Source of the DNA: Guillardia theta CCMP2712
Lineage: Eukaryota > Protista > Cryptophyta
DNA length: 64,000 nucleotides
Direction: 5' to 3'
NCBI RefSeq assembly: GCF_000315625.1
Contig: NW_005434630.1
Span: 508,711 to 572,710 of the forward strand
This document shows, in pieces, positions 17,350 to 64,000 of this stretch. The position numbers were made by a program, and so were the translations under genes. The notes below the pieces were generated by a model. That model was given only the letters and a program-made list of their open reading frames with translations, did no database searches and was not told the origin of the DNA. Position 1 is the first letter of the stretch, and each line of letters opens with the position of its first letter.

Positions 17350-20300
17350 TCAGGGCCCTTCCGTCACATCGCAGGGTCGCATGGCAGGAGAGGACGCGGC
17401 GTTGAGCTCCTTCCACGCCCTCTCCCCGCTGCTGAGCTTCAGCTGGAGACTCTCTTGGATCTCCCGCATCTTCTGCTCGTGCGCAGACGTGCTCTGCCTG
17501 ATCTTTGCGCGGGTCTTGTCGTCCTGCTGGGGAAGAGCTGAGTGGACGGCAGTTGCGAGCTTCAGGTCCCTCTCCCGCGTCTGCTTCCTGTACTTGCCGT
17601 TCTTCCCCGCCGCCTTCTCCACCATCTTGAGCTTTGCGCTCTCTGCTGCTCGGCAGATCCGCTCGAGGCGTATGGCGACGATCTCCCTCCTCTGCCGCTG
17701 CGCGTCCTGCTGGTACCAGTCCAGGAACTTGAGGATTTCCTTTACGTCATCCGCCCCCTCGCCGCCCTCCTCCATGCCCTCCTCCTCCCGGTCCAGGTCC
17801 ATGCTGCCGCTCTGCCGGACATGCCGGGAGGGGAGGAAGCGCTCGGCAACCTCGGCGTCCTCGATGGCCTTGAGGATGATGCGACGGTTCTCCTCGACTT
17901 GCCCGAGCACATTGCGGAACACGAGGATCATGGCGACCTGCAGGTCCTGCTCCTGCGGGAACGAGTGGAAGAGGCGGAGGAGGAGCTCAAGGCCGCAGCC
18001 CTCGCGGAAGGAAGCCTTCTCCGCCACCCACTCGAAGCTGAAGCCCTGCATGAGCATGGCGGCGCCAGAGGAGGAGAGAGGAGCTTGAAGGCAGTGGATG
18101 ATGAGCTTGTCCCGCAGGTCGAGGAGACCGACCTCAAGCATCATCGTCCTGATCTGATTTGAGTTGCGATTCGCCACCCGATTGAGGATCCTGACAACGC
18201 GAAGCGGGAGAGCAGGGGAGGAGGAGGAGGAGGAGGAGGAGGAAGATGAAGGAGAGGACAAAGAGGAGGAGGACTCGACAAGACGTCGGAAGATCCGCTC
18301 CAAGCTCTTGAGCACGGCGTTGACGTTGGGAGTCTGAGCCGGAGAAATCTCAGCGTTCTCCTCTAGCCGCTGGAGAATCTGGGATGCAAAAGTTAGTCCA
18401 GCGTGGACGGATGAGGAGGAGAACGAAAGGGTTGGAAGGAAGGGAATGCTTGCAGGTAGGAGGAGGTAGAGGGTTACCTCTTCCAGGACGGGGAGATACA
18501 GCAGGTCGTTTCGAATCAGCTCCTTCACATTCAGAACCTTCACGTCCTGCCACAGCCCGTGCCATGCCATGCTCCCTGCCACCCTCCCGATCGTCTCCCT
18601 CAGTTCTCTCTGCGTCCGCTCCCACTGGTCCCCTCGCCCTCGCCCTGCCCGCCCCTCCTCCTCCAGCCGCATGAGGATGCGTCGGCAGCAGTCAAGGCCG
18701 CCGGAGAGGAGGAACTTGACGGAGCTGAAAGGGTCGTCGAGGAGGAGGAGGACGCGCTTGCAGACGTCTAGACTCGCATCTTCCTCCTCGAGAGCAGGGA
18801 GAAGGTTCAGCAAGACCTGTAGGAGGTAGAAGTTCGGAAGCAGCACGGGCTCTTTCTCTGCCCTGCTCTCCGCCGCAGCCTTCCGCAGCAGCGCTGACGT
18901 GGCGTGCTGGAGCAGCGCATTGACGAGCATCATGCTGCTCCTCTGCGCTGGAGGACCTCAAGCATGAGCTCGAAGCCGCAGGACTTGAGGAAGAGCTTGC
19001 AGTCCTTGGGGGAGGAGAGGAGGAGGGCCAGGACATCGACGCCCCTGCAGCGCAGGCTCTCGTCCTCTGAGGAGAGGAGGCAAAAGCCGAGCTGGAACCC
19101 TCCTGCCGCTCGGAGGTAGTCGAGAGGGACGACAGAGGAGGAGGAGAGGGTGAGGAGGAGGAGCATGAGGTCGTTGTTGACCTGCGAGAGGTGCGGCAGG
19201 TGCATCCGACCGATCACCGCTTGCATGATCTCCGACACGTCGTTGACTGTCCACAGCCTGCAGGACCAGTCAGATGCATGGAGGAAGTGGGAGAGGCGAG
19301 GAAGGGAAGGTGAGGATTGCGAGGAAGGCAGAACAGAAGAAAGAAGGGAGGAGGGGGAAGAGGAAGTGGGGAAGGAGGATGAAGATGGAAAGGTGAGGAT
19401 AGGAAGGGGAGGATCGAGGAGGAAACTGGACCAGACATGGCGTGCAAGGAAAGGTTTGAACTTACGGCGCAAGCTGCTGCATGAGGGAGATGGAGATGGT
19501 CCAGAAGGAGGGGGGGAGAGCATCAAGAAAGTAGAGGAGGCGAGAGGTCCCGAGGAGAGGATACGACATCCACATGGTCCGGCTGCTGCTGGAGGACATG
19601 AAGCTGTCCTCAAGCACCCGCAGCAGGTCGCGCTGGATGTCGGAGGAAGAGGAGGGGATGAGGTCGACGAGGAGGAGGGAGACTTCAGGGTCTCTGAGGG
19701 TCTTTCCTCCTACCTCCTTGGAGGAGAGGTGCAGGAGGAGAGACATGACGGGGCCTTGGTCTCCTCCCCGGCCCAGCTGCTGGTGCACGACGTAGCAGAG
19801 AATCTGCAGGATGGTGTGAGGAGGGAGCGAAGAGAGAGAGGAGGGAGGAGGGAGGAGGGAGGAGGGAGGAGGACGGAGGAAAAGAGAGTGGAGACGAAGT
19901 AAGGGAGAAGGTAGGGGAGGAGAGGCTGCGAAGGAAGTACAGCAGAGGAATGGGGGATGAAAAAGAGGAGGAGGAGGAGGAGGAGGAGGAGGAGGAGGAG
20001 CAATGGGTTTCATACGCTGCATCCTTTTGCTGCCAGGAAAGCTCTGAAATTCGGTTCCCAGCGGACGAGAAGACCAACAAGAACCTCAAGCGCTTGAAGT
20101 TGAAGCTGCTCCTCTTGCGGAGAGATGAGCCTGCTCCCGACATTATCTCTCCTCTCCTCCCTCCCCTCCCCTCCCCTCCCCTCCCCTCCTCTTTTCTCTC
20201 TTTCTCTGGCTTCTGCTGCTCACCTTAGCGCTAGTTGAATGCCCCCGATCTGCAGAATCGTAAGGAGAAGGAAGTGAATGATGGGGAAACGAGACTGAGA

Positions 20301-47442: not shown

Positions 47443-50090
47443 TCACAGTCTCGTCAACTTCTCCGCGCTGGAAGTCTTGCTGGGGGGAACACCAACGATG
47501 ACATCGTTCTTGGTGCTCAGCTCAGGGAGCAGCAACTTGAAGCTGAGGAGCCACAGATCAACTCCTCCTCCTCCTCCTCCTCCTCCTCCTCCTCCTCCTC
47601 CTCCTCCTCCTCCTCCTCCTCCTCTCGCTGCTGCTCCTGCAGCTGCCACTGCTGCTCCTGCTGCCACTCGATGCCCTCCTTCATCCTCTCCTCCCATCTT
47701 CCCGCCCCTCGTACTGACAGGAGCGTGACGTAGCCATNNNNNNNNNNNNNNNNNNNNNNNNNNNNNNNNNNNNNNNNNNNNNNNNNNNNNNNNNNNNNNN
47801 NNNNNNNNNNNNNNNNNNNNNNNNNNNNNNNNNNNNNNNNNNNNNNNNNNNNNNNNNNNNNNNNNNNNNNNNNNNNNNNNNNNNNNNNNNNNNNNNNNNN
47901 NNNNNNNNNNNNNNNNNNNNNNNNNNNNNNNNNNNNNNNNNNNNNNNNNNNNNNNNNNNNNNNNNNNNNNNNNNNNNNNNNNNNNNNNNNNNNNNNNNNN
48001 NNNNNNNNNNNNNNNNNNNNNNNNNNNNNNNNNNNNNNNNNNNNNNNNNNNNNNNNNNNNNNNNNNNNNNNNNNNNNNNNNNNNNNNNNNNNNNNNNNNN
48101 NNNNNNNNNNNNNNNNNNNNNNNNNNNNNNNNNNNNNNNNNNNNNNNNNNNNNNNNNNNNNNNNNNNNNNNNNNNNNNNNNNNNNNNNNNNNNNNNNNNN
48201 NNNNNNNNNNNNNNNNNNNNNNNNNNNNNNNNNNNNNNNNNNNNNNNNNNNNNNNNNNNNNNNNNNNNNNNNNNNNNNNNNNNNNNNNNNNNNNNNNNNN
48301 NNNNNNNNNNNNNNNNNNNNNNNNNNNNNNNNNNNNNNNNNNNNNNNNNNNNNNNNNNNNNNNNNNNNNNNNNNNNNNNNNNNNNNNNNNNNNNNNNNNN
48401 NNNNNNNNNNNNNNNNNNNNNNNNNNNNNNNNNNNNNNNNNNNNNNNNNNNNNNNNNNNNNNNNNNNNNNNNNNNNNNNNNNNNNNNNNNNNNNNNNNNN
48501 NNNNNNNNNNNNNNNNNNNNNNNNNNNNNNNNNNNNNNNNNNNNNNNNNNNNNNNNNNNNNNNNNNNNNNNNNNNNNNNNNNNNNNNNNNNNNNNNNNNN
48601 NNNNNNCCCCCTCCGACCTCGGACCTCCGACCTCCGACCCTCCGACCCTCCGACCCTCCGACCCTCCCTCCCCGGGCGACGCTCCTGTCATCGTTCCCTC
48701 CCTCCCTCCTCCCCCCTCCCTCCTCCTCCCCCTCCTCCTCCTCCCCACCGGTTTCACGTTCTTCAGCTGGGCTTCAGCTGACCTCTGCGCGAGGATCTCG
48801 ACCGACTTGCGGTTCATGTCGACGCCGATGAAACGGCAGCCGCTGCTCCTCCTATCAGCCGCGAAGAGGTAGAAGAGCAGCTCACGGCAGCACAGAGGCG
48901 AGAGGGAGGAGGAGATTGCCTGAGCCGCAGCCGAAGTCAACGATGACAGGAGCGTCGCCCTGGTCCTTGAGGTCACTCGGACAGGACAAGTTTGTCGGTC
49001 ACCTCCCAGCCTGCGAGGATTTCTCGGAGGAGGAGGAGGAAACTCTCCACTTGCTTCCTGTCTGCGGGTCAGCAACATCAACGAGAGCAGAAGCAGAAAC
49101 CGCTTCCTCGTCGCTCTGCTCTCCGCTGTCTCCATCTTCCTCTCCCGTCGCCGCTTCCTGCCGTCCTCCTCCTCCTTCAACGTGAAGTCTGGCCGGCAAG
49201 AGCTGGGGATGCTCTCCCAGTCTATCACGAGCTGCTCGGGGCAAGACAGCTCCCGCCAGGCGTCAGTTGAGAGAGGAGGAGGAGCGAGGCGATCGATGAC
49301 CTGAGCCAATTCAGCGGCGACGAGGAGCAAGGCAGCAGAGACAAGCAAGAAGATGAAGACAGAAGAGAGGAGAAGGCGTGGAAGGAGGGAGGAATAGGCA
49401 CTAAAAGGAGGAAGAAGACCTTCTTCAATCCTTCTTGATTTCTGTCGATTTTCCTCCTCCTCTTTCGCGAGTTGTGAGCTTTCCGTACCTCCAGGCGAGT
49501 CTTCTTCTCCTCCTCTTCTCTTCGCCTCCTCTCCTCCTCCTCGGTGTCAAACTCGCTCCGTTTCTTGGCTCTCGACGCTCGGAGCCTCGCGCGCGCTCCC
49601 TCTCCCATCTCCTGTCCCTCGACGCTGTCGATGACGCGCTGGACGAGGGAGGAGTGACGGACCTTGAGGAGCGCGTAGCCCTGGTGCTCCTTGTCTGCGT
49701 CCCTCCTGCTTCTCTTCTCCTCGAACGCCACGACCAGCAGCTCCGAGATCGCGTCGCTGACCCTCCTCTCCTCCTCTCCTTGCAGTGGCAGCTGACCGAG
49801 AAAGCGAGAAAGCGCCGCCTCCACCTTATGCATGGGACTATGCCAGTCAAGGAAGCCGACGTAGACCCAAACGTTCCCGTCCTCCCTCCCTCCCTCTCCT
49901 CCCTCCCCTCCCCTCCCCTTCCCTTCCCCTCCCTCCCTCCTCTCCCTCTCCCCCCCCCGCCCTCCCGAGTGAAGAAGGAGAGCAACGATGCGAGATGATA
50001 CCGCGTGCCTGAGCGGGGAAGATGATGAGAGAACATCTAGAGAGCTCAAAAATGCCTTCACCTGATCTCACTGCTACTCGAACGACGAAA
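47443..50090 (-). CDS. GSTCD-like class I SAM-dependent methyltransferase (partial, interrupted by gaps)
   Basis: IDWESIP..CRP, RATRKR..QVES, motif I VIVDFGCGSGNL, FIGVDMN, C-terminal LPELSTKNDVIVG. Confidence 0.7.
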
Positions 50091-50542
50091 NNNNNNNNNN
50101 NNNNNNNNNNNNNNNNNNNNNNNNNNNNNNNNNNNNNNNNNNNNNNNNNNNNNNNNNNNNNNNNNNNNNNNNNNNNNNNNNNNNNNNNNNNNNNNNNNNN
50201 NNNNNNNNNNNNNNNNNNNNNNNNNNNNNNNNNNNNNNNNNNNNNNNNNNNNNNNNNNNNNNNNNNNNNNNNNNNNNNNNNNNNNNNNNNNNNNNNNNNN
50301 NNNNNNNNNNNNNNNNNNNNNNNNNNNNNNNNNNNNNNNNNNNNNNNNNNNNNNNNNNNNNNNNNNNNNNNNNNNNNNNNNNNNNNNNNNNNNNNNNNNN
50401 NNNNNNNNNNNNNNNNNNNNNNNNNNNNNNNNNNNNNNNNNNNNNNNNNNNNNNNNNNNNNNNNNNNNNNNNNNNNNNNNNNNNNNNNNNNNNNNNNNNN
50501 NNNNNNNNNNNNNNNNNNNNNNNNNNNNNNNNNNNNNNNNNN

Positions 50543-50693
50543 AGCCTGTGGCGTTCCGCCTCGCATCATCACCCAAGTCCACCAAGCTTCCGCCCGGTGA
50601 GCAATGGCGACCGCCACCTTGAAGTCGGCGCAGGATCGGCATTGGTAAAGATGGGCCCTCGGCCTCGCCCGCACAGTCCAGACACACTCCCCC
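50543..50693 (-). ncRNA. 7SL: SRP RNA (7SL), internal fragment between gaps
   Basis: Same sequence as the helix 5/6 region of complete copies. Confidence 0.7.
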
Positions 50694-51369
50694 NNNNNNN
50701 NNNNNNNNNNNNNNNNNNNNNNNNNNNNNNNNNNNNNNNNNNNNNNNNNNNNNNNNNNNNNNNNNNNNNNNNNNNNNNNNNNNNNNNNNNNNNNNNNNNN
50801 NNNNNNNNNNNNNNNNNNNNNNNNNNNNNNNNNNNNNNNNNNNNNNNNNNNNNNNNNNNNNNNNNNNNNNNNNNNNNNNNNNNNNNNNNNNNNNNNNNNN
50901 NNNNNNNNNNNNNNNNNNNNNNNNNNNNNNNNNNNNNNNNNNNNNNNNNNNNNNNNNNNNNNNNNNNNNNNNNNNNNNNNNNNNNNNNNNNNNNNNNNNN
51001 NNNNNNNNNNNNNNNNNNNNNNNNNNNNNNNNNNNNNNNNNNNNNNNNNNNNNNNNNNNNNNNNNNNNNNNNNNNNNNNNNNNNNNNNNNNNNNNNNNNN
51101 NNNNNNNNNNNNNNNNNNNNNNNNNNNNNNNNNNNNNNNNNNNNNNNNNNNNNNNNNNNNNNNNNNNNNNNNNNNNNNNNNNNNNNNNNNNNNNNNNNNN
51201 NNNNNNNNNNNNNNNNNNNNNNNNNNNNNNNNNNNNNNNNNNNNNNNNNNNNNNNNNNNNNNNNNNNNNNNNNNNNNNNNNNNNNNNNNNNNNNNNNNNN
51301 NNNNNNNNNNNNNNNNNNNNNNNNNNNNNNNNNNNNNNNNNNNNNNNNNNNNNNNNNNNNNNNNNNNNN

Positions 51370-51638
51370 GGGCTCCGGGTGATCCGCCCCCCAATTCACC
51401 CACGTGATCGCTTCACTGATGACGGCGGAGACTTTTCCTTGCTCTGTTTCCAGCCTGTGGCGTTCCGCCTCGCATCATCACCCAAGTCCACCAAGCTTCC
51501 GCCCGGTGAGCAATGGCGACCGCCACCTTGAAGTCGGCGCAGGATCGGCATTGGTAAAGATGGGCCCTCGGCCTCGCCCGCACAGTCCAGACACACTCCC
51601 CCCGCTCGGGCTACAGCCAGGCGCGACCCTGGCCGGGA
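51370..51638 (-). ncRNA. 7SL: SRP RNA (7SL), 3' end lost in gap
   Basis: Alu domain, helix 6 and helix 8 present. Confidence 0.8.
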
Positions 51639-51778
51639 AAGCTCTCCGAGGCATCGAACCTCGCCATAAGGGCCTTCAACCCTGAGAGCCGCCTCTCCTC
51701 CCCTCCCCTCCCCTCCCCTCCCTTGACGCTCCCCAGAGGTTGCGAGCCCCTGACCCTGGGCCTTCCCCCAGAGAGAGC

Positions 51779-52081
51779 AAAACATTGCGCGTGCCTGTCC
51801 CATCCTAGCAGGGCTCCGGGTGATCCGCCCCCCAANNNNNNNNNNNNNNNNNNNNNNNNNNNNNNNNNNNNNNNNNNNNNNNNNNNNNNNNNNNNNNNNN
51901 NNNNNNNNNNNNNNNNNNNNNNNNNNNNNNNNNNNNNNNNNNCCCGGTGAGCAATGCAGACCAGAACTCTTGAAGTCGTAGCAGAGATCGGCACTTGTAA
52001 AGATGGCAGGCATGCCTCGTCTGCACAGACCAGCCACACTCTCTCCTCTCGGGCTACAGCCAGGCGCGACCCTGTCCGGGA
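51779..52081 (-). ncRNA. 7SL: SRP RNA (7SL), gapped divergent copy
   Basis: Both ends present; many substitutions next to the gap. Confidence 0.6.
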
Positions 52082-52221
52082 AAGCTCTTCGAGGCATCGA
52101 GCCTCGCCATAAGGGCCTTCAACCAGGAGAGCCTCCTCTCCTCCCCTCCCCTCCCCTCCCCTCCCTTGACGCTCCCCAGAGGTTGCGAGCCCCTGACCCT
52201 GGGCCTTCCCCCAGAGAGAGC

Positions 52222-52522
52222 AAAACATTGCGCGTGCCTGTCCCATCCTAGCAGGGCTCCGGGTGATCCGCCCCCCAATTCACCCACGTGATCGCTTCAC
52301 TGATGACGGCGGAGACTTTTCCTTGCTCTGTTTCCAGCCTGTGGCGTTCCGCCTCGCATCATCACCCAAGTCCACCAAGCTTCCGCCCGGTGAGCAATGG
52401 CGACCGCCACCTTGAAGTCGGCGCAGGATCGGCATTGGTAAAGATGGGCCCTCGGCCTCGCCCGCACAGTCCAGACACACTCCCCCCGCTCGGGCTACAG
52501 CCAGGCGCGACCCTGGCCGGGA
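52222..52522 (-). ncRNA. 7SL: SRP RNA (7SL), complete, ~300 nt
   Basis: Alu domain UCCC-G-GCCAGG(gucgcg)CCUGGC-UGUAG-CCC(gagc)GGG-GGGA; helix 5 GUGUGUCUG/CAGGCACGC; helix 6 CCGGGC-GGAA-GCUUGG; helix 8 CAGG-CUG-GAAA-CAG-AGCA (SRP54 site); ends in UUUU. Confidence 0.9.
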
Positions 52523-52574
52523 AAGCTCTCCGAGGCATCGAACCTCGCCATAAGGGCCTTCAACCCTGAGAGCC
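52523..52574 (-). ncRNA. 52-nt tRNA-like element fused 5' of SRP RNA (representative copy; others start at 51639, 52082, 52979, 55704, 56175, 56615, 57066, 57566, 58022, 59381, 59822)
   Basis: Acceptor GGCUCUC/GAGAGCU plus discriminator U; middle hairpin AGGG-UUGAAGG-CCCU; T arm CGAGG-UUCGAUG-CCUCG (B-box GGTTCGANNCC); one tRNA arm missing. Confidence 0.75.
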
Positions 52575-52677
52575 GCCTCTCCTCCCCTCCCCTCCCCTCC
52601 CCTCCCCTCCCCTCCCATCCCTTGACGCTCCCCAGAGGTTGCGAGCCCCTGACCCTGGGCCTTCCCCCAGAGAGAGC

Positions 52678-52978
52678 AAAACATTGCGCGTGCCTGTCCC
52701 ATCCTAGCAGGGCTCCGGGTGATCCGCCCCCCAATTCACCCACGTGATCGCTTCACTGATGACGGCGGAGACTTTTCCTTGCTCTGTTTCCAGCCTGTGG
52801 CGTTCCGCCTCGCATCATCACCCAAGTCCACCAAGCTTCCGCCCGGTGAGCAATGGCGACCGCCACCTTGAAGTCGGCGCAGGATCGGCATTGGTAAAGA
52901 TGGGCCCTCGGCCTCGCCCGCACAGTCCAGACACACTCCCCCCGCTCGGGCTACAGCCAGGCGCGACCCTGGCCGGGA
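52678..52978 (-). ncRNA. 7SL: SRP RNA (7SL), complete
   Basis: Same motifs as the 52222-52522 copy. Confidence 0.9.
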
Positions 52979-53207
52979 AAGCTCTCCGAGGCATCGAACC
53001 TCGCCATAAGGGCCTTCAACCCTGAGAGCCGCCTCTCCTCCCCTCCCCTCCCCTCCCTTGCCGCAGGTGAGGGGGAGGGAGGGCAAAAGCTTTCCATATT
53101 ATTGGGCNNNNNNNNNNNNNNNNNNNNNNNNNNNNNNNNNNNNNNNNNNNNNNNNNNNNNNNNNNNNNNNNNNNNNNNNNNNNNNNNNNNNNNNNNNNNN
53201 NNNNNNN

Positions 53208-54703
53208 CGATCTCTTCGCGTATGCGACGCCAGCAGCTCGGGACATCGCGCGCCGGCTGCAGGAGTTCATGCGGGAGTGCGTGTATCCGGCCGAGGAGAG
53301 CGTCATGCGCCATGCGCAGGGCAAGGAGCGCTGGACGGTACCGGCAGAGGTGGAGGAGCTCAAGGAGGAGGCGAAGAGGAGGGGCCTCTGGAACCTCTGG
53401 ATCACGCGCGACCTTGATCCCGGACATGATGGCGCGGGCTTGACCAACGTCGACTACGCGGGGCTCGCGGAGGTGCTGGGGGCGGTTCCCTTCGCATCCG
53501 AGCTGGTCAACTGCTCGGCGCCGGACACAGGGAACATGGAGGTGCTGCTCAAGTACGGGAGCGAAGAGCTCAAGCGCAAGTTCCTCCCCGACCTCCTCAG
53601 CGGCAAAGCAAGGAGCTGCTTCGCCATGACTGAACCAGCCGTCGCCTCCTCCGATGCCACCAACGTGCAGTCGACGATCCGGAGGGAGGGCGATCGCTAC
53701 GTGCTCAACGGGAGGAAGTGGTGGACGTCAGGCGCCATGGATCCGCGATGCAGCGTCATGATCTTCATGGGCAAGACGGACCCGTCGGCTCCTCGTCACC
53801 AGCAGCAGTCCATGGTTGTCGTTCCCATGCCCTCCCCGGGACTCCGCGTCCTCCGTCCCCTCAGAGTCTTCGGCTTCGACGACGCTCCTCACGGCCATGC
53901 GGAGGTCGAGCTCAAGGACGTCTCAGTCCCCGCCAGTCACCTCCTCCTCGGCGAGGGTCGAGGCTTCGAGATCGCGCAGGGCAGGCTCGGGCCTGGGCGC
54001 ATCCACCACTGCATGAGGCTCATCGGACTCGCTGAACGTTCGCTGGCGCTCATGTGCAAGCGAGCCAAGCAACGAGTCGCCTTCGGGAAGAAGCTGGAGG
54101 AACAAGGGACCATCAGGGCTGACATCGCTCGCGCTAGGCTCATGATCAACCAGGTCTCCTCTTGCCGCTGCCCTCCGCTTCTCCTCCCTGCCTCTCACCT
54201 TCTCTCAGACTCGACTCCTCTGCCTCGACGCCGCTCGTGCCATCGACATGGGAGGACCCAAGGCAGCGCGGGAGGCCATCGCGCTCATCAAGGTGACGGG
54301 AGGAGGAGGAGGAGGAGTCCCTGACGCCCTGCAGGTCGCGGCACCTCAGATGGCAGTCTGGGTCACCGACAGAGCCATGCAGGTTCAGTCCCTCATCACC
54401 CTACTGCTCCTCTTGCTCCTGCTCTCCCTTCGCCTTGTTGTCGTTCCTCCTTCTCCATCCCCCTCATCCTAGAGCGAGGGTTCTCTGCTTCTCTTTCCCT
54501 CACGTGCAGCAGGTGCATGGAGCCGCAGGCTTCTGCGACGACTTTCCTCTCTCCTTCCTCTACGCTCAGGTAACATCAGCACATCTTGACCCACACCCCC
54601 TCATCTCGAGCAGGCGCGAACCCTCCAGATGGCCGACGGACCTGACGAGGTTCACTTGGAAAGCATCGCAAGGATGGAGCTCAACAAGCACAAACAAGAC
54701 TAG
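53208..54703 (+). CDS. Acyl-CoA dehydrogenase, ACAD10/11/IBR3/FadE2 type (5' end in gap)
   Basis: [74 protein letters not shown]. Confidence 0.95.
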
Positions 54704-54909
54704 AACAACAAATCAGATGCATCTACAATACAACCAATCGAAACGCAAAGACAACCTTCAACCCTGAGAGCCGCCTCTCCTCCCCTCCCCTCCCCTCCCC
54801 TCCCCTCCCCTCCCCTCCCCTCCCCTCCCCTCCCCTCCCTTGACGCTCCCCAGAGGTTGCGAGCCCCTGACCCTGGGCCTTCCCCCAGAGAGAGCAAAAC
54901 ATAGAGAGC

Positions 54910-55203
54910 AAAACATTGCGCGTGCCTGTCCCATCCTAGCAGGGCTCCGGGTGATCCGCCCCCCAATTCACCCACGTGATCGCTTCACTGATGACGGCGG
55001 AGNNNNNNNNNNNNNNNNNNNNNNNNNNNNNNNNNNNNNNNNNNNNNNNNNNNNNNNNNNNNNNNNNNNNNNNNNNNNNNNNNNNNNNNNNNNNNNNNNN
55101 NNCACCCAAGTCCACCAAGCTTCCGCCCGGTGAGCAATGGCGACCGCCACCTTGAAGTCGGCGCAGGATCGGCATTGGTAAAGATGGGCCCTCGGCCTCG
55201 CCC
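54910..55203 (-). ncRNA. 7SL: SRP RNA (7SL), partial gapped copy
   Basis: 3' end and helix 6 region visible. Confidence 0.65.
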
Positions 55204-55538
55204 NNNNNNNNNNNNNNNNNNNNNNNNNNNNNNNNNNNNNNNNNNNNNNNNNNNNNNNNNNNNNNNNNNNNNNNNNNNNNNNNNNNNNNNNNNNNNNNNN
55301 NNNNNNNNNNNNNNNNNNNNNNNNNNNNNNNNNNNNNNNNNNNNNNNNNNNNNNNNNNNNNNNNNNNNNNNNNNNNNNNNNNNNNNNNNNNNNNNNNNNN
55401 NNNNNNNNNNNNNNNNNNNNNNNNNNNNNNNNNNNNNNNNNNNNNNNNNNNNNNNNNNNNNNNNNNNNNNNNNNNNNNNNNNNNNNNNNNNNNNNNNNNN
55501 NNNNNNNNNNNNNNNNNNNNNNNNNNNNNNNNNNNNNN

Positions 55539-55703
55539 ATCATCACCCAAGTCCACCAAGCTTCCGCCCGGTGAGCAATGGCGACCGCCACCTTGAAGTC
55601 GGCGCAGGATCGGCATTGGTAAAGATGGGCCCTCGGCCTCGCCCGCACAGTCCAGACACACTCCCCCCGCTCGGGCTACAGCCAGGCGCGACCCTGGCCG
55701 GGA
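55539..55703 (-). ncRNA. 7SL: SRP RNA (7SL), 5' half
   Basis: Alu domain and helix 6 present; rest in gap. Confidence 0.7.
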
Positions 55704-55873
55704 AAGCTCTCCGAGGCATCGAACCTCGCCATAAGGGCCTTCAACCCTGAGAGCCGCCTCTCCTCCCCTCCCCAAGCATCTAGGAGCTTCCCGTCCCCTC
55801 CCCTCCCCTCCCCTCCCTTGACGCTCCCCAGAGGTTGCGAGCCCCTGGCCCTGGGCCTTCCCCCACAGAGAGA

Positions 55874-56174
55874 ACAACATTGACCGTGCCTGTCCCATCG
55901 TGGCAGGTCTCCGGGTGATCCGCCCCCCAATTCACCCACGTGATCGCTTCACTGATGACGGCGGAGACTTTTCCTTGCTCTGTTTCCAGCCTGTGGCGTT
56001 CCGCCTCGCATCATCACCCAAGTCCACCAAGCTTCCGCCCGGTGAGCAATGGCGACCGCCACCTTGAAGTCGGCGCAGGATCGGCATTGGTAAAGATGGG
56101 CCCTCGGCCTCGCCCGCACAGTCCAGACACACTCCCCCCGCTCGGGCTACAGCCAGGCGCGACCCTGGCCGGGA
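55874..56174 (-). ncRNA. 7SL: SRP RNA (7SL), full length with variant 3' end (no T4 run)
   Basis: Core motifs intact; 3' end reads ...GGCACGGUCAAUGUUGUUC. Confidence 0.8.
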
Positions 56175-56313
56175 AAGCTCTCCGAGGCATCGAACCTAGC
56201 CATAAGGCCATTAACCCCTGAGAGCCGCCTCTCCTCCCCTCCCCTCCCCTCCCTCCCTTGACGCTCCCCAGAGGTTGCGAGCCCCTGACCCTGGGCCTTC
56301 CCCCAGAGAGAGC

Positions 56314-56614
56314 AAAACATTGCGCGTGCCTGTCCCATCCTAGCAGGGCTCCGGGTGATCCGCCCCCCAATTCACCCACGTGATCGCTTCACTGATGACG
56401 GCGGAGACTTTTCCTTGCTCTGTTTCCAGCCTGTGGCGTTCCGCCTCGCATCATCACCCAAGTCCACCAAGCTTCCGCCCGGTGAGCAATGGCGACCGCC
56501 ACCTTGAAGTCGGCGCAGGATCGGCATTGGTAAAGATGGGCCCTCGGCCTCGCCCGCACAGTCCAGACACACTCCCCCCGCTCGGGCTACAGCCAGGCGC
56601 GACCCTGGCCGGGA
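56314..56614 (-). ncRNA. 7SL: SRP RNA (7SL), complete
   Basis: Same motifs as the 52222-52522 copy. Confidence 0.9.
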
Positions 56615-56764
56615 AAGCTCTCCGAGGCATCGAACCTCGCCATAAGGGCCTTCAACCCTGAGAGCCGCCTCTCCTCCCCTCCCCTCCCCTCCCCTCCCCT
56701 CCCCTCCCTTGACGCTCCCCAGAGGTTGCGAGCCCCTGACCCTGGGCCTTCCCCCAGAGAGAGC

Positions 56765-57065
56765 AAAACATTGCGCGTGCCTGTCCCATCCTAGCAGGGC
56801 TCCGGGTGATCCGCCCCCCAATTCACCCACGTGATCGCTTCACTGATGACGGCGGAGACTTTTCCTTGCTCTGTTTCCAGCCTGTGGCGTTCCGCCTCGC
56901 ATCATCACCCAAGTCCACCAAGCTTCCGCCCNNNNNNNNNNNNNNNNNNNNNNNNNNNNNNNNNNNNNNNNNNNNNNNNNNNNNNNNNNNNNNNNNNNNN
57001 NNNNNNNNNNNNNNNNNNNNNNNNNNNNNNNNNNNNNNNNNNNNNAGGCGCGACCCTGGCCGGGA
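56765..57065 (-). ncRNA. 7SL: SRP RNA (7SL), gapped copy
   Basis: Both ends and helix 8 visible. Confidence 0.8.
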
Positions 57066-57200
57066 AAGCTCTCCGAGGCATCGAACCTCGCCATAAGGGC
57101 CTTCAACCCTGAGAGCCGCCTCTCCTCCCCTCCCCTCCCCTCCCTTGACGCTCCCCAGAGGTTGCGAGCCCCTGACCCTGGGCCTTCCCCCAGAGAGAGC

Positions 57201-57565
57201 AAAACATTGCNNNNNNNNNNNNNNNNNNNNNNNNNNNNNNNNNNNNNNNNNNNNNNNNNNNNNNNNNNNNNNNNNNNNNNNNNNNNNNNNNNNNNNNNNN
57301 NNNNNNNNNNCCGCCCCCCAATTCACCCACGTGATCGCTTCACTGATGACGGCGGAGACTTTTCCTTGCTCTGTTTCCAGCCTGTGGCGTTCCGCCTCGC
57401 ATCATCACCCAAGTCCACCAAGCTTCCGCCCGGTGAGCAATGGCGACCGCCACCTTGAAGTCGGCGCAGGATCGGCATTGGTAAAGATGGGCCCTCGGCC
57501 TCGCCCGCACAGTCCAGACACACTCCCCCCGCTCGGGCTACAGCCAGGCGCGACCCTGGCCGGGA
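57201..57565 (-). ncRNA. 7SL: SRP RNA (7SL), gapped copy
   Basis: Alu, helix 6 and helix 8 visible; gap near the 3' end. Confidence 0.8.
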
Positions 57566-57720
57566 AAGCTCTCCGAGGCATCGAACCTCGCCATAAGGGC
57601 CTTCAACCCTGAGAGCCGCCTCTCCTCCCCTCCCCTCCCCTCCCCTCCCCTCCCCTCCCCTCCCTTGACGCTCCCCAGACTGACCCTGGCCTTCCCCCAG
57701 AGCCTTCCCCCAGAGAGAGC

Positions 57721-58021
57721 AAAACATTGCGCGTGCCTGTCCCATCCTAGCAGGGCTCCGGGTGATCCGCCCCCCAATTCACCCACGTGATCGCTTCACT
57801 GATGACGGCGGAGACTTTTCCTTGCTCTGTTTCCAGCCTGTGGCGTTCCGCCTCGCATCATCACCCAAGTCCACCAAGCTTCCGCCCGGTGAGCAATGGC
57901 GACCGCCACCTTGAAGTCGGCGCAGGATCGGCATTGGTAAAGATGGGCCCTCGGCCTCGCCCGCACAGTCCAGACACACTCCCCCCGCTCGGGCTACAGC
58001 CAGGCGCGACCCTGGCCGGGA
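57721..58021 (-). ncRNA. 7SL: SRP RNA (7SL), complete
   Basis: Same motifs as the 52222-52522 copy. Confidence 0.9.
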
Positions 58022-58176
58022 AAGCTCTCCGAGGCATCGAACCTCGCCATAAGGGCCTTCAACCCTGAGAGCCGCCTCTCCTCTCCTCCCCTCCCCTCCC
58101 CTCCCCTCCCCTCCCCTCCCTTGACGCTCCCCAGAGGTTGCGAGCCCCTGACCCTGGGCCTTCCCCCAGAGAGAGC

Positions 58177-58328
58177 AAAACATTGCGCGTGCCTGTCCCA
58201 TCCTAGCAGGGCTCCGGGTGATCCGCCCCCCAATTCACCCACGTGATCGCTTCACTGATGACGGCGGAGACTTTTCCTTGCTCTGTTTCCAGCCTGTGGC
58301 GTTCCGCCTCGCATCATCACCCAAGTCC
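58177..58328 (-). ncRNA. 7SL: SRP RNA (7SL), 3' half
   Basis: Helix 8 and terminator visible. Confidence 0.7.
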
Positions 58329-59077
58329 NNNNNNNNNNNNNNNNNNNNNNNNNNNNNNNNNNNNNNNNNNNNNNNNNNNNNNNNNNNNNNNNNNNNNNNN
58401 NNNNNNNNNNNNNNNNNNNNNNNNNNNNNNNNNNNNNNNNNNNNNNNNNNNNNNNNNNNNNNNNNNNNNNNNNNNNNNNNNNNNNNNNNNNNNNNNNNNN
58501 NNNNNNNNNNNNNNNNNNNNNNNNNNNNNNNNNNNNNNNNNNNNNNNNNNNNNNNNNNNNNNNNNNNNNNNNNNNNNNNNNNNNNNNNNNNNNNNNNNNN
58601 NNNNNNNNNNNNNNNNNNNNNNNNNNNNNNNNNNNNNNNNNNNNNNNNNNNNNNNNNNNNNNNNNNNNNNNNNNNNNNNNNNNNNNNNNNNNNNNNNNNN
58701 NNNNNNNNNNNNNNNNNNNNNNNNNNNNNNNNNNNNNNNNNNNNNNNNNNNNNNNNNNNNNNNNNNNNNNNNNNNNNNNNNNNNNNNNNNNNNNNNNNNN
58801 NNNNNNNNNNNNNNNNNNNNNNNNNNNNNNNNNNNNNNNNNNNNNNNNNNNNNNNNNNNNNNNNNNNNNNNNNNNNNNNNNNNNNNNNNNNNNNNNNNNN
58901 NNNNNNNNNNNNNNNNNNNNNNNNNNNNNNNNNNNNNNNNNNNNNNNNNNNNNNNNNNNNNNNNNNNNNNNNNNNNNNNNNNNNNNNNNNNNNNNCTCCC
59001 CCTCCCCTCCCCTCCCCTCCCTTGACGCTCCCCAGAGGTTGCGAGCCCCTGACCCTGGGCCTTCCCCCAGAGAGAGC

Positions 59078-59380
59078 AAAACATTGCGCGTGCCTGTCCC
59101 ATCCTAGCAGGGCTCCGGGTGATCCGCCCCCCAATTCACCCACGTGATCGCTTCACTGATGACGGCGGAGACTTTTCCTTGCTCTGTTTCCAGCCTGTGG
59201 CGTTCCGCCTCGCATCATCACCCAAGTCCACCAAGCTTCCGCCCGGTGAGCAATGGCGACCGCCACCTTGAAGTCGGCGCAGGATCGGCATTGGTAAAGA
59301 GTCGGGCCCTCGGCCTCGCCCGCACAGTCCAGACACACTCCCCCCGCTCGGGCTACAGCCAGGCGCGACCCTGGCCGGGA
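59078..59380 (-). ncRNA. 7SL: SRP RNA (7SL), complete (2-nt insertion in helix 5)
   Basis: Same motifs as the 52222-52522 copy. Confidence 0.88.
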
Positions 59381-59520
59381 AAGCTCTCCGAGGCATCGAA
59401 CCTCGCCATAAGGGCCTTCAACCCTGAGAGCCGCCTCTCCTCCCCTCCCCTCCCCTCCCCTCCCTTGACGCTCCCCAGAGGTTGCGAGCCCCTGACCCTG
59501 GGCCTTCCCCCAGAGAGAGC

Positions 59521-59821
59521 AAAACATTGCGCGTGCCTGTCCCATCCTAGCAGGGCTCCGGGTGATCCGCCCCCCAATTCACCCACGTGATCGCTTCACT
59601 GATGACGGCGGAGACTTTTCCTTGCTCTGTTTCCAGCCTGTGGCGTTCCGCCTCGCATCATCACCCAAGTCCACCAAGCTTCCGCCCGGTGAGCAATGGC
59701 GACCGCCACCTTGAAGTCGGCGCAGGATCGGCATTGGTAAAGATGGGCCCTCGGCCTCGCCCGCACAGTCCAGACACACTCCCCCCGCTCGGGCTACAGC
59801 CAGGCGCGACCCTGGCCGGGA
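59521..59821 (-). ncRNA. 7SL: SRP RNA (7SL), complete, first (most upstream) unit of the array
   Basis: Same motifs as the 52222-52522 copy. Confidence 0.9.
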
Positions 59822-59873
59822 AAGCTCTCCGAGGCATCGAACCTCGCCATAAGGGCCTTCAACCCTGAGAGCT
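59822..59873 (-). ncRNA. tRNA-like element of the first unit, with fully Watson-Crick acceptor stem AGCUCUC/GAGAGCU
   Basis: Repeat homology ends at this element's 5' end; unique AT-rich sequence lies upstream. Confidence 0.75.
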
Positions 59874-63709: not shown

Positions 63710-64000
63710 TACCTTTCCTGTCCTTCTTTCCTTCCTCTCCCCTCTCCTCCCCCCCTCCCTTCCTCCCACTCCCCCTCCCTCCCCCCACTCCCCCTTCCTT
63801 CCCCTCCCCTCCCCCTCCCTTCCCCTCCCTTCCCCTCCCCTCCCTTCCCCTCCCCTCCCCCTCCCTTCCCTTCCCCTCCTCTCCCTTCCCCTCCCCTCCG
63901 TTCCCTTCCCCTCCGTTCCCTTCCCCTCCTCTCCCTTCCCCTCCTCTCCGTTCCCTTCCCTTCCCCTCCCTTCCCCTCCTCTCCTCTCCTCTTTCCTCCC
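63710..64000. repeat. Polypyrimidine (CCCCT/CTTCC)n low-complexity tract
   Basis: Directly visible. Confidence 0.95.

Follow-up and report, generated by a model that had tools for sequence, protein, structure and literature searches.

The RNA of the signal recognition particle (7SL RNA or SRP RNA) is essential, and it is encoded by one to a few gene copies in most studied eukaryotes. The classical tandem arrays under concerted evolution are formed by the genes of 5S rRNA, spliced-leader RNA and small nuclear RNAs (snRNAs). Here we describe a 64,000-nucleotide stretch of the genome of the cryptophyte alga Guillardia theta CCMP2712 (NCBI RefSeq assembly GCF_000315625.1, contig NW_005434630.1, forward-strand positions 508,711 to 572,710; hereafter the window), in which canonical eukaryotic cytosolic SRP RNA genes stand in a head-to-tail array. 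An original prediction, made from the letters of the window, had read an apparent satellite of 9 kb at 50543-59873 as a homogenized array of such genes. We consider it very probable that the array is a genuine and functional one, and we report two tRNA-like modules in each of its units which are candidate promoter elements.

SRP RNA genes seldom form tandem arrays, though there are precedents. In zebrafish, chromosome 11 carries 67 SRP RNA genes in three clusters, which are at least 91% alike, and solitary variants lie elsewhere (bioRxiv 10.1101/869651). The original prediction stated that genes for SRP RNA usually lie dispersed; this holds only roughly, and these clustered copies are an exception to it. 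The G. theta locus is similar to that of zebrafish in that many near-identical genes lie at one locus, with solitary copies elsewhere. It differs in that the zebrafish, a vertebrate, has a maternal (chromosome 11 clusters) and somatic division of labor, whereas the array described here has a broken solitary copy, a unit of ~450 bp, B-box modules and a microsatellite. In some ectomycorrhizal basidiomycetes, the SRP RNA gene is found inside the internal transcribed spacer (ITS) of the ribosomal DNA (PMC9849065). There too the gene has been made multi-copy and tandem, but it rides in the rDNA repeat, whereas in G. theta the SRP cassette itself is the repeat unit and an Rfam scan found no rRNA nearby. 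With 5S, spliced-leader and snRNA arrays, the locus shares short head-to-tail units that each hold one small-RNA gene with its promoter and terminator, as well as homogenization within the species and diverging spacers. Unlike 5S arrays, its cargo is SRP RNA, and it is small (probably about 17 copies) and split by a protein-coding gene. A literature search returned no paper joining SRP or 7SL RNA with cryptophytes, or SRP RNA with Guillardia. Studies of frog tandem repeats and of Schistosoma non-coding RNAs were considered as precedents and rejected, as they describe no SRP RNA arrays.

Identity and layout of the SRP RNA genes

The whole window was scanned with Rfam 15 using cmscan. Nine full-length matches to the SRP model RF00017 (clan CL00003; model positions 1-299) were found between 51362 and 59820, all on the minus strand. 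Five scored 134.6 bits, and the remaining four scored 132.6, 128.6, 118.2 and 110.4 bits (E-values of 3e-34 to 3e-27), well over the gathering score of 70 bits. Such a comparison with the Rfam SRP models had been proposed together with the original prediction, and the seven gap-free, near-identical copies which it had counted are the seven matches at 128.6 bits or more. A genome-wide search with RF00017 returned the same nine array matches.

The RF00017 alignment contains both domains of the RNA. In the Alu domain, helix 2 is paired, the UGUNR motif is present as CUGUAG, and the region of helices 3 and 4 can be aligned. In the S domain, helix 6 is GGCGGAAGCU with a GGAA loop of the GNAR type, and helix 8 is CCACAGGCUGGAAACAGAGCAAGG (CAGG..GGAAAC..AGCA), with a GNRA loop and the conserved internal loops. 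The long helix 5 is visible and the 3′ end of the RNA is AAUGUUUU. The RNA-coding part is 292 nt in the standard array copy, and the oligo-T terminator AATGTTTT comes after every good-quality copy. All of the hallmarks from which SRP RNA genes had been predicted (UGUAG, helices 5, 6 and 8, and the T4 run) were therefore recovered in matches of 110-134.6 bits.

Tandem Repeats Finder (TRF) gave repeat periods of 440 and 456, and one unit searched with BLAST against the window placed every array piece in a single phase, in agreement with the ~440-456 bp originally given for the unit. Thirteen unit starts are visible, and unit lengths range from 436 to 471 bp across the array. Read in the sense of the RNA, each unit consists of a B-box/T-arm module, the 292-nt SRP RNA, the T4 terminator, a degenerate second module and a (GGGGA)n microsatellite, the last of which is the source of the unit-length classes. 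Microsatellites of the CCCTC/CCTCC type that resemble this spacer tract were also seen at 48609-48746, 49877-49966, 63730-64000 and 20147-20193. As similar tracts are common elsewhere in the window, the motif is genome-typical low complexity and not specific to the array. The coordinates of blocks, genes and unit parts are given in Table 1.

The array is not uninterrupted, as it had first been pictured, but consists of two blocks with an acyl-CoA dehydrogenase gene between them. The prediction was right in calling the SRP RNA genes canonical, head-to-tail and homogenized, but it had overlooked their location on the minus strand, the gene that interrupts them and the module that follows the terminator. 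At its upstream edge (59872/59873) block B adjoins unique AT-rich DNA, and at its downstream edge (54755) the repeat stops 17 nt into the upstream module of the next unit. The start of block A, at 53057, falls within the (GGGGA)n spacer, and the block may continue into the gap at 50091-50542. The sequence between the blocks is unique in the genome. Its acyl-CoA dehydrogenase gene (53208-54700 plus 53058-53107, plus strand) has the Pfam N, M and C domains, contains introns and is seemingly intact; it is oriented opposite to the SRP RNA genes, and its 5′ end enters a run of 100 N (53108-53207) less than 200 nt from block A. Both junctions between a block and this unique DNA sit in contiguous sequence, but the assembled distance between the blocks is not reliable because the 100-N placeholder sits between the junctions. 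One gap-free gene (55882-56173) represents a copy in decay or, alternatively, sequence of poor quality.

Table 1. Features of the SRP RNA gene array in the G. theta window (window coordinates).
Feature	Position	Strand	Details
Array block B	54755..59873	-	11 units assembled, one hidden in gap 58329-58995
Array block A	50543..53057	-	6 units assembled, one hidden in gap 50694-51369
Unique inter-block DNA	53058..54754	+	Acyl-CoA dehydrogenase gene; outside the repeat
SRP RNA gene	59529..59820	-	Gap-free, 134.6 bits; first gene of array
SRP RNA gene	59086..59379	-	Gap-free, 132.6 bits; length 294 nt, two additional bases (59301-59303)
SRP RNA gene	57729..58020	-	Gap-free, 134.6 bits
SRP RNA gene	57284..57564	-	110.4 bits; 3′ end enters N-run 57211-57310
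SRP RNA gene	56322..56613	-	Gap-free, 134.6 bits
SRP RNA gene	55882..56173	-	Gap-free, 128.6 bits; 3′-end substitutions, T4 run reads TTGTT
SRP RNA gene (reference unit)	52686..52977	-	Gap-free, 134.6 bits; T4 terminator 52678-52681
SRP RNA gene	52230..52521	-	Gap-free, 134.6 bits
SRP RNA gene	51362..51637	-	118.2 bits; 3′ end enters N-run 50694-51369
Upstream tRNA-like module (reference unit)	52978..53029	-	49 nt, then TTT, then first SRP RNA base
Downstream degenerate tRNA-like module (reference unit)	52625..52675	-	Directly after T4 terminator
(GGGGA)n microsatellite of spacer	52576..52621	-	Reads (CCTCC)n on plus strand

Copy number and the probable working SRP RNA genes

Fifteen genes have visible sequence in the assembly, 7/15 being gap-free, and gap lengths imply two more, giving about 17. 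Three runs of N (51836-51942, 107 nt; 56932-57045, 114 nt; 55204-55538, 335 nt) have exactly the length of the unit part missing between their flanks, the fit of the 335-N run presupposing the common short microsatellite class. Two longer runs (50694-51369, 676 nt; 58329-58995, 667 nt) have the length of the missing part and one further unit, within 2-4 nt. Because these lengths match the missing unit parts, the sequence on either side of the sized gaps is continuous in repeat phase. The exactly fitting runs may represent masked or unreadable bases of known length, as mate-pair estimates so exact would be odd. The runs at 53108-53207, 55003-55102 and 57211-57310 are 100-N placeholders whose lengths are uninformative. 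The suspicion that gaps hide further copies agrees with the two additional genes that the 676-N and 667-N runs imply. The earlier figure of at least 15 equals the visible count of the assembly, but independent evidence secures only at least eight copies.

That lower bound comes from the spacers. Eight gap-free gene-to-gene spacers were found (140-171 nt), with seven distinct sequences which differ by whole 5-nt repeat units, by one 15-nt insertion and by one rearranged segment. As all seven of these distinct spacers are complete and within contiguous sequence, at least eight real copies are implied. We regard at least eight copies as firm and about 17 as probable, 15-17 being the figure of the assembly. 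A stretch of 85% identity at 51943-52229 was considered as an old diverged copy and rejected, as its mismatches are packed against the neighboring gap; it is probably a poor read end.

Public sequencing runs were compared as assembled (Logan) contigs, and copy number cannot be read from these. Three independent runs collapsed the unit to a contig of 430-468 nt, which past 59872 enters the spacer and not the unique flank; a collapsed unit contig of this kind is the expected look of a tandem repeat after short-read assembly. In one metagenome run (X5), the unit was assembled and the adjoining unique DNA was not, as expected of a multi-copy sequence. The exact products of two spurious open reading frames inside the unit have no database record, hence no other assembly of the array was found. 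When the unit at 52230-52685 was used as a query, more than 10 aquatic metagenome runs from six studies held 75-85% of its sampled 31-mers, spacer included. Several of these runs are labeled freshwater, lake or runoff, which is odd for a marine alga; library carry-over, a widespread close relative, or a multi-copy unit that alone is abundant enough to assemble are possible reasons.

Some of these data weigh against a large array. A copy number above eight relies on a gap-ridden scaffold with contigs of about single-read size; the array is assembled from nine short contigs (101-1795 nt) split by runs of N, and some apparent variants cluster at contig ends, as errors at read ends would. The unit contig of run X2 had a word depth of 13, compared to 4.73 for a nearby single-copy contig, but this 2.7-fold ratio (~3 copies if the run were genomic) is not a copy number and the figure was not used. 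The longest X2 contig is only 6.3 kb, suggesting an RNA library; with DNA as the source, an alga would normally be expected to yield long organelle contigs. An assembly over-expansion, in which the same reads were placed repeatedly and only one to three real SRP RNA genes exist, would fit the fragmented contigs and the variants at their ends, as well as the X2 depth if that were taken as genomic. It does not fit the seven distinct complete spacers in contiguous sequence, the three different array-to-unique junctions that also lie in contiguous sequence, or the unit assembled in X5 without its adjacent unique DNA, and in assembly, near-identical repeats are as a rule collapsed and not expanded. 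We therefore consider over-expansion very improbable. Slighter still is the chance that the array is a dead 7SL-derived satellite, with non-functional copies and a working gene elsewhere or unassembled. Small-RNA genes can give rise to satellites, and the unit at 55882-56173 lacks the T4 run and has changes in its upstream module. Every good-quality copy, however, retains a full-scoring structure; compared with relatives, the RNA-coding sequence has been conserved and shows compensatory changes, and the flanking modules have been kept in the relatives as well (see below). A contig from an RNA run is identical to array sequence, and the assembly holds just one other copy, which is disrupted.

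When the entire 87-Mb assembly was searched as DNA, SRP RNA sequence turned up only in this array and in one copy on another contig (C24, 213000-213800). The C24 copy is about 99% identical in its RNA part, but it carries insertions of 21 nt and 57 nt and has TTT in place of the T4 run. Direct copies of a ~80-nt dispersed repeat lie on either side of it. Genome-wide, 752 candidate sites were counted for this repeat, which probably represents a mobile-element end, and an inverted fragment of it makes up the 57-nt insertion. This copy was rejected as a second working gene on account of its two insertions, one of them a dispersed-repeat fragment, and its lack of a T4 run, and judged by its sequence it is a pseudogene. 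As the sole other copy is disrupted, the array is the only intact SRP RNA source in the assembly. A 278-nt contig from an RNA run matched 59535-59812 exactly, within the predicted RNA at 59529-59820. As evidence for expression this has its weakness, being a metatranscriptome contig that does not define the ends of the RNA and gives no information on abundance. Of the protein partners, SRP19 has a gene on contig C87 (86.8 bits); SRP9 and SRP14 were not detected in a six-frame genome search, which misses short split exons.

Related genes and probable concerted evolution

Relatives were recovered from metagenome contigs by one scan with a 31-nt helix 8 word, which returned five contigs. Three of these (L028, L029 and L030) carry SRP RNA genes scoring 137-162 bits. 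The terminators in relatives range from T4 to T6. The array gene shares 83-86% identity with the genes of the relatives (about 84% with the nearest). In comparison with L028 and L029, 11/91 predicted pairs stay paired through changes on both sides, in an alignment of only four sequences of which one is the broken C24 copy. These changes include pair 8-19 of helix 2, which is A-U or G-C, whilst the S-domain region of helices 6 and 8 is invariant in the relatives. Within the array, no differences were found in the RNA-coding part among good-quality copies, and the spacer flanks are also identical. The spacers of the relatives could not be aligned to those of the array outside the modules. In L029, a single contig with two copies, tandem genes start at 883 and 1303, giving a period of 420 nt, with the same cassette order and a spacer of its own. 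L028 has a single SRP gene with no neighboring copy within 2.7 kb.

The suggestion of concerted evolution in the original prediction is supported by the near-100% identity within the array as against ~84% to the relatives, and by the tandem habit that L029 shares. Identical copies could instead stem from a recent lineage-specific burst, without long-term homogenization. The near-identity of the copies, spacer included, would fit a burst, as would the finding of two copies in only one relative contig and of a solitary gene in L028. The tandem copies in L029, however, share the cassette order and differ from the array in spacer and in their 420-nt period, so that the tandem habit is probably older than the split, and several microsatellite length classes had time to arise in the array. 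On balance we find a recent burst unlikely, though less so than an assembly artifact. In the reading that we prefer, which is that of a homogenized array of working genes, unequal crossing-over or gene conversion would keep the units alike, and the (GGGGA)n tract would be their slippery part, changing length by slippage. Each unit would be an independent RNA polymerase III (Pol III) transcription unit, and the array would supply the bulk of the SRP RNA of the cell, as 5S or spliced-leader arrays supply their RNAs. The original prediction had gone further and suggested that high SRP RNA dosage possibly serves heavy co-translational import of plastid- and periplastid-bound proteins into the endoplasmic reticulum (ER) in an alga with a complex plastid. 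The level of an RNA, however, is poorly reflected by the number of its genes. Zebrafish, which has no plastids, also has multi-copy SRP RNA clusters (bioRxiv 10.1101/869651). We rate this explanation as quite unlikely, more so than a recent burst.

A further metagenome contig, L031 (Ga0307489_10057064), holds at 1430-1660 a ~95-nt SRP fragment with only the S domain (helices 6-8, 41 bits). It is preceded by telomere-like CCCTAAA repeats and ends in a T6 run, followed by a well-formed downstream module. The fragment can be read as a pseudogene that was truncated or else as a mini SRP-like RNA.

tRNA-like modules beside SRP and U3 genes

Pol III elements outside the mature RNA are known from several small-RNA genes. 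Yeast RPR1 has its promoter in the 5′ leader and yeast SNR6 has a B box after its terminator, whilst trypanosomatid 7SL genes need tRNA genes upstream of them and are associated with a tRNA-like RNA. The units of the G. theta array are similar to these in that T-arm-like hairpins with a B-box-like sequence (GGTTCRANNCC) lie upstream and downstream of the SRP RNA. They differ in that the modules have no D arm, stand in the same orientation as the gene and, for the upstream one, abut the first base of the RNA. In contrast to the trypanosomatid 7SL RNA, the SRP RNA here keeps its canonical Alu domain.

The ends of the upstream module are complementary (GCTCTC..GAGAGC), with a small GGG..CCC hairpin inside. 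Its T-arm-like hairpin, CGAGG-UUCGAUG-CCUCG, holds GGTTCGATGCC, which fits the B-box consensus GGTTCGANNCC. A covariance model (R1) was built from eight module elements. In the window R1 found 13 upstream and 12 downstream modules, all within the array. It also found elements that had not been in its seed, namely those in L031 and in L027, another of the relatives, and those after the U3 snoRNA genes (E about 1e-8 or lower). The same modules are carried, well formed, by L028, L029, L027 and L031. Pairing in the R1 alignment reaches 98.7% for the T-arm-like helix, two pairs of which change on both sides.

The three U3 snoRNA genes (RF00012, 94 bits) lie on contig C10 at 881.4, 924.0 and 925.4 kb, and each is closed by a T4 run, after which comes at once a well-formed D-armless module of the kind seen beside the SRP genes, ~15 nt past the 3′ end of the gene. 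Two of the three are divergent and about 900 nt apart. Outside the SRP and U3 loci, the module pattern was also matched at C32:535096-535117 (locus L035) and at C235:6855-6881. No known RNA family was found at L035 by Rfam; an unannotated small RNA may lie next to its module. Contig L028 (Ga0115567_10043980; region 800-1300) has a second tRNA-like module at 1226-1272, about 480 nt upstream of its SRP gene, followed by GC-rich structured sequence without an Rfam match. These upstream elements may be further small-RNA cassettes.

The L028 module at 1226-1272 scored 31.5 bits on the Rfam mascRNA-menRNA model (RF01684), below its threshold of 42.5. The mascRNA of MALAT1 and MEN-beta is similar in being a small tRNA-like fold directly after another RNA, but in the cassettes of the array the RNA is separated from the module by a T-run terminator. 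As this terminator precedes the downstream module, RNase P cleavage is not needed to make the 3′ end of the SRP RNA. The upstream module was considered as a true tRNA gene and rejected, since ARAGORN and the Rfam tRNA model gave nothing.

We read the modules as putative extragenic B-box elements, and the two in each unit would recruit TFIIIC; the upstream one may be transcribed and then removed by RNase P or RNase Z. Several observations speak against a promoter role. The downstream module has a broken B box in this genome (GGCTCGCAACC), the modules are without a D arm and no clear A box was identified, and pairing of the acceptor-like helix reaches only 66% when the R1 model is fitted to the alignment. 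Nor was the upstream module called as a tRNA by ARAGORN in the window or by the Rfam tRNA model at E-values up to 10. We propose tentatively that in cryptophyte-like algae SRP and U3 cassettes are bracketed by D-armless modules acting as TFIIIC promoters. The upstream module might also be an RNase Z handle by which the 5′ end of the SRP RNA is made from a tRNA-like/7SL precursor, and in that case the tandem SRP array would belong to the cassette system as a conserved trait of the lineage and would not be a one-off amplification. We hold this proposal, taken as a whole, to be possible rather than likely.

The alga's assembly encodes intact SRP RNA only in a homogenized array, compared to the usual one or few genes. 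With units of ~450 bp and a built-in microsatellite length marker, the array offers a compact natural system in which to study how a Pol III gene besides 5S evolves in concert. Annotation is affected too: masking would otherwise treat the stretch as a satellite, and the assembly of the locus is poor. The question of SRP RNA dosage versus complex-plastid import load becomes testable by comparing plastid-bearing and plastid-lacking relatives. The modules that flank the SRP genes and follow the U3 genes point to an undescribed promoter or processing architecture, and are a more interesting lead than the array itself.

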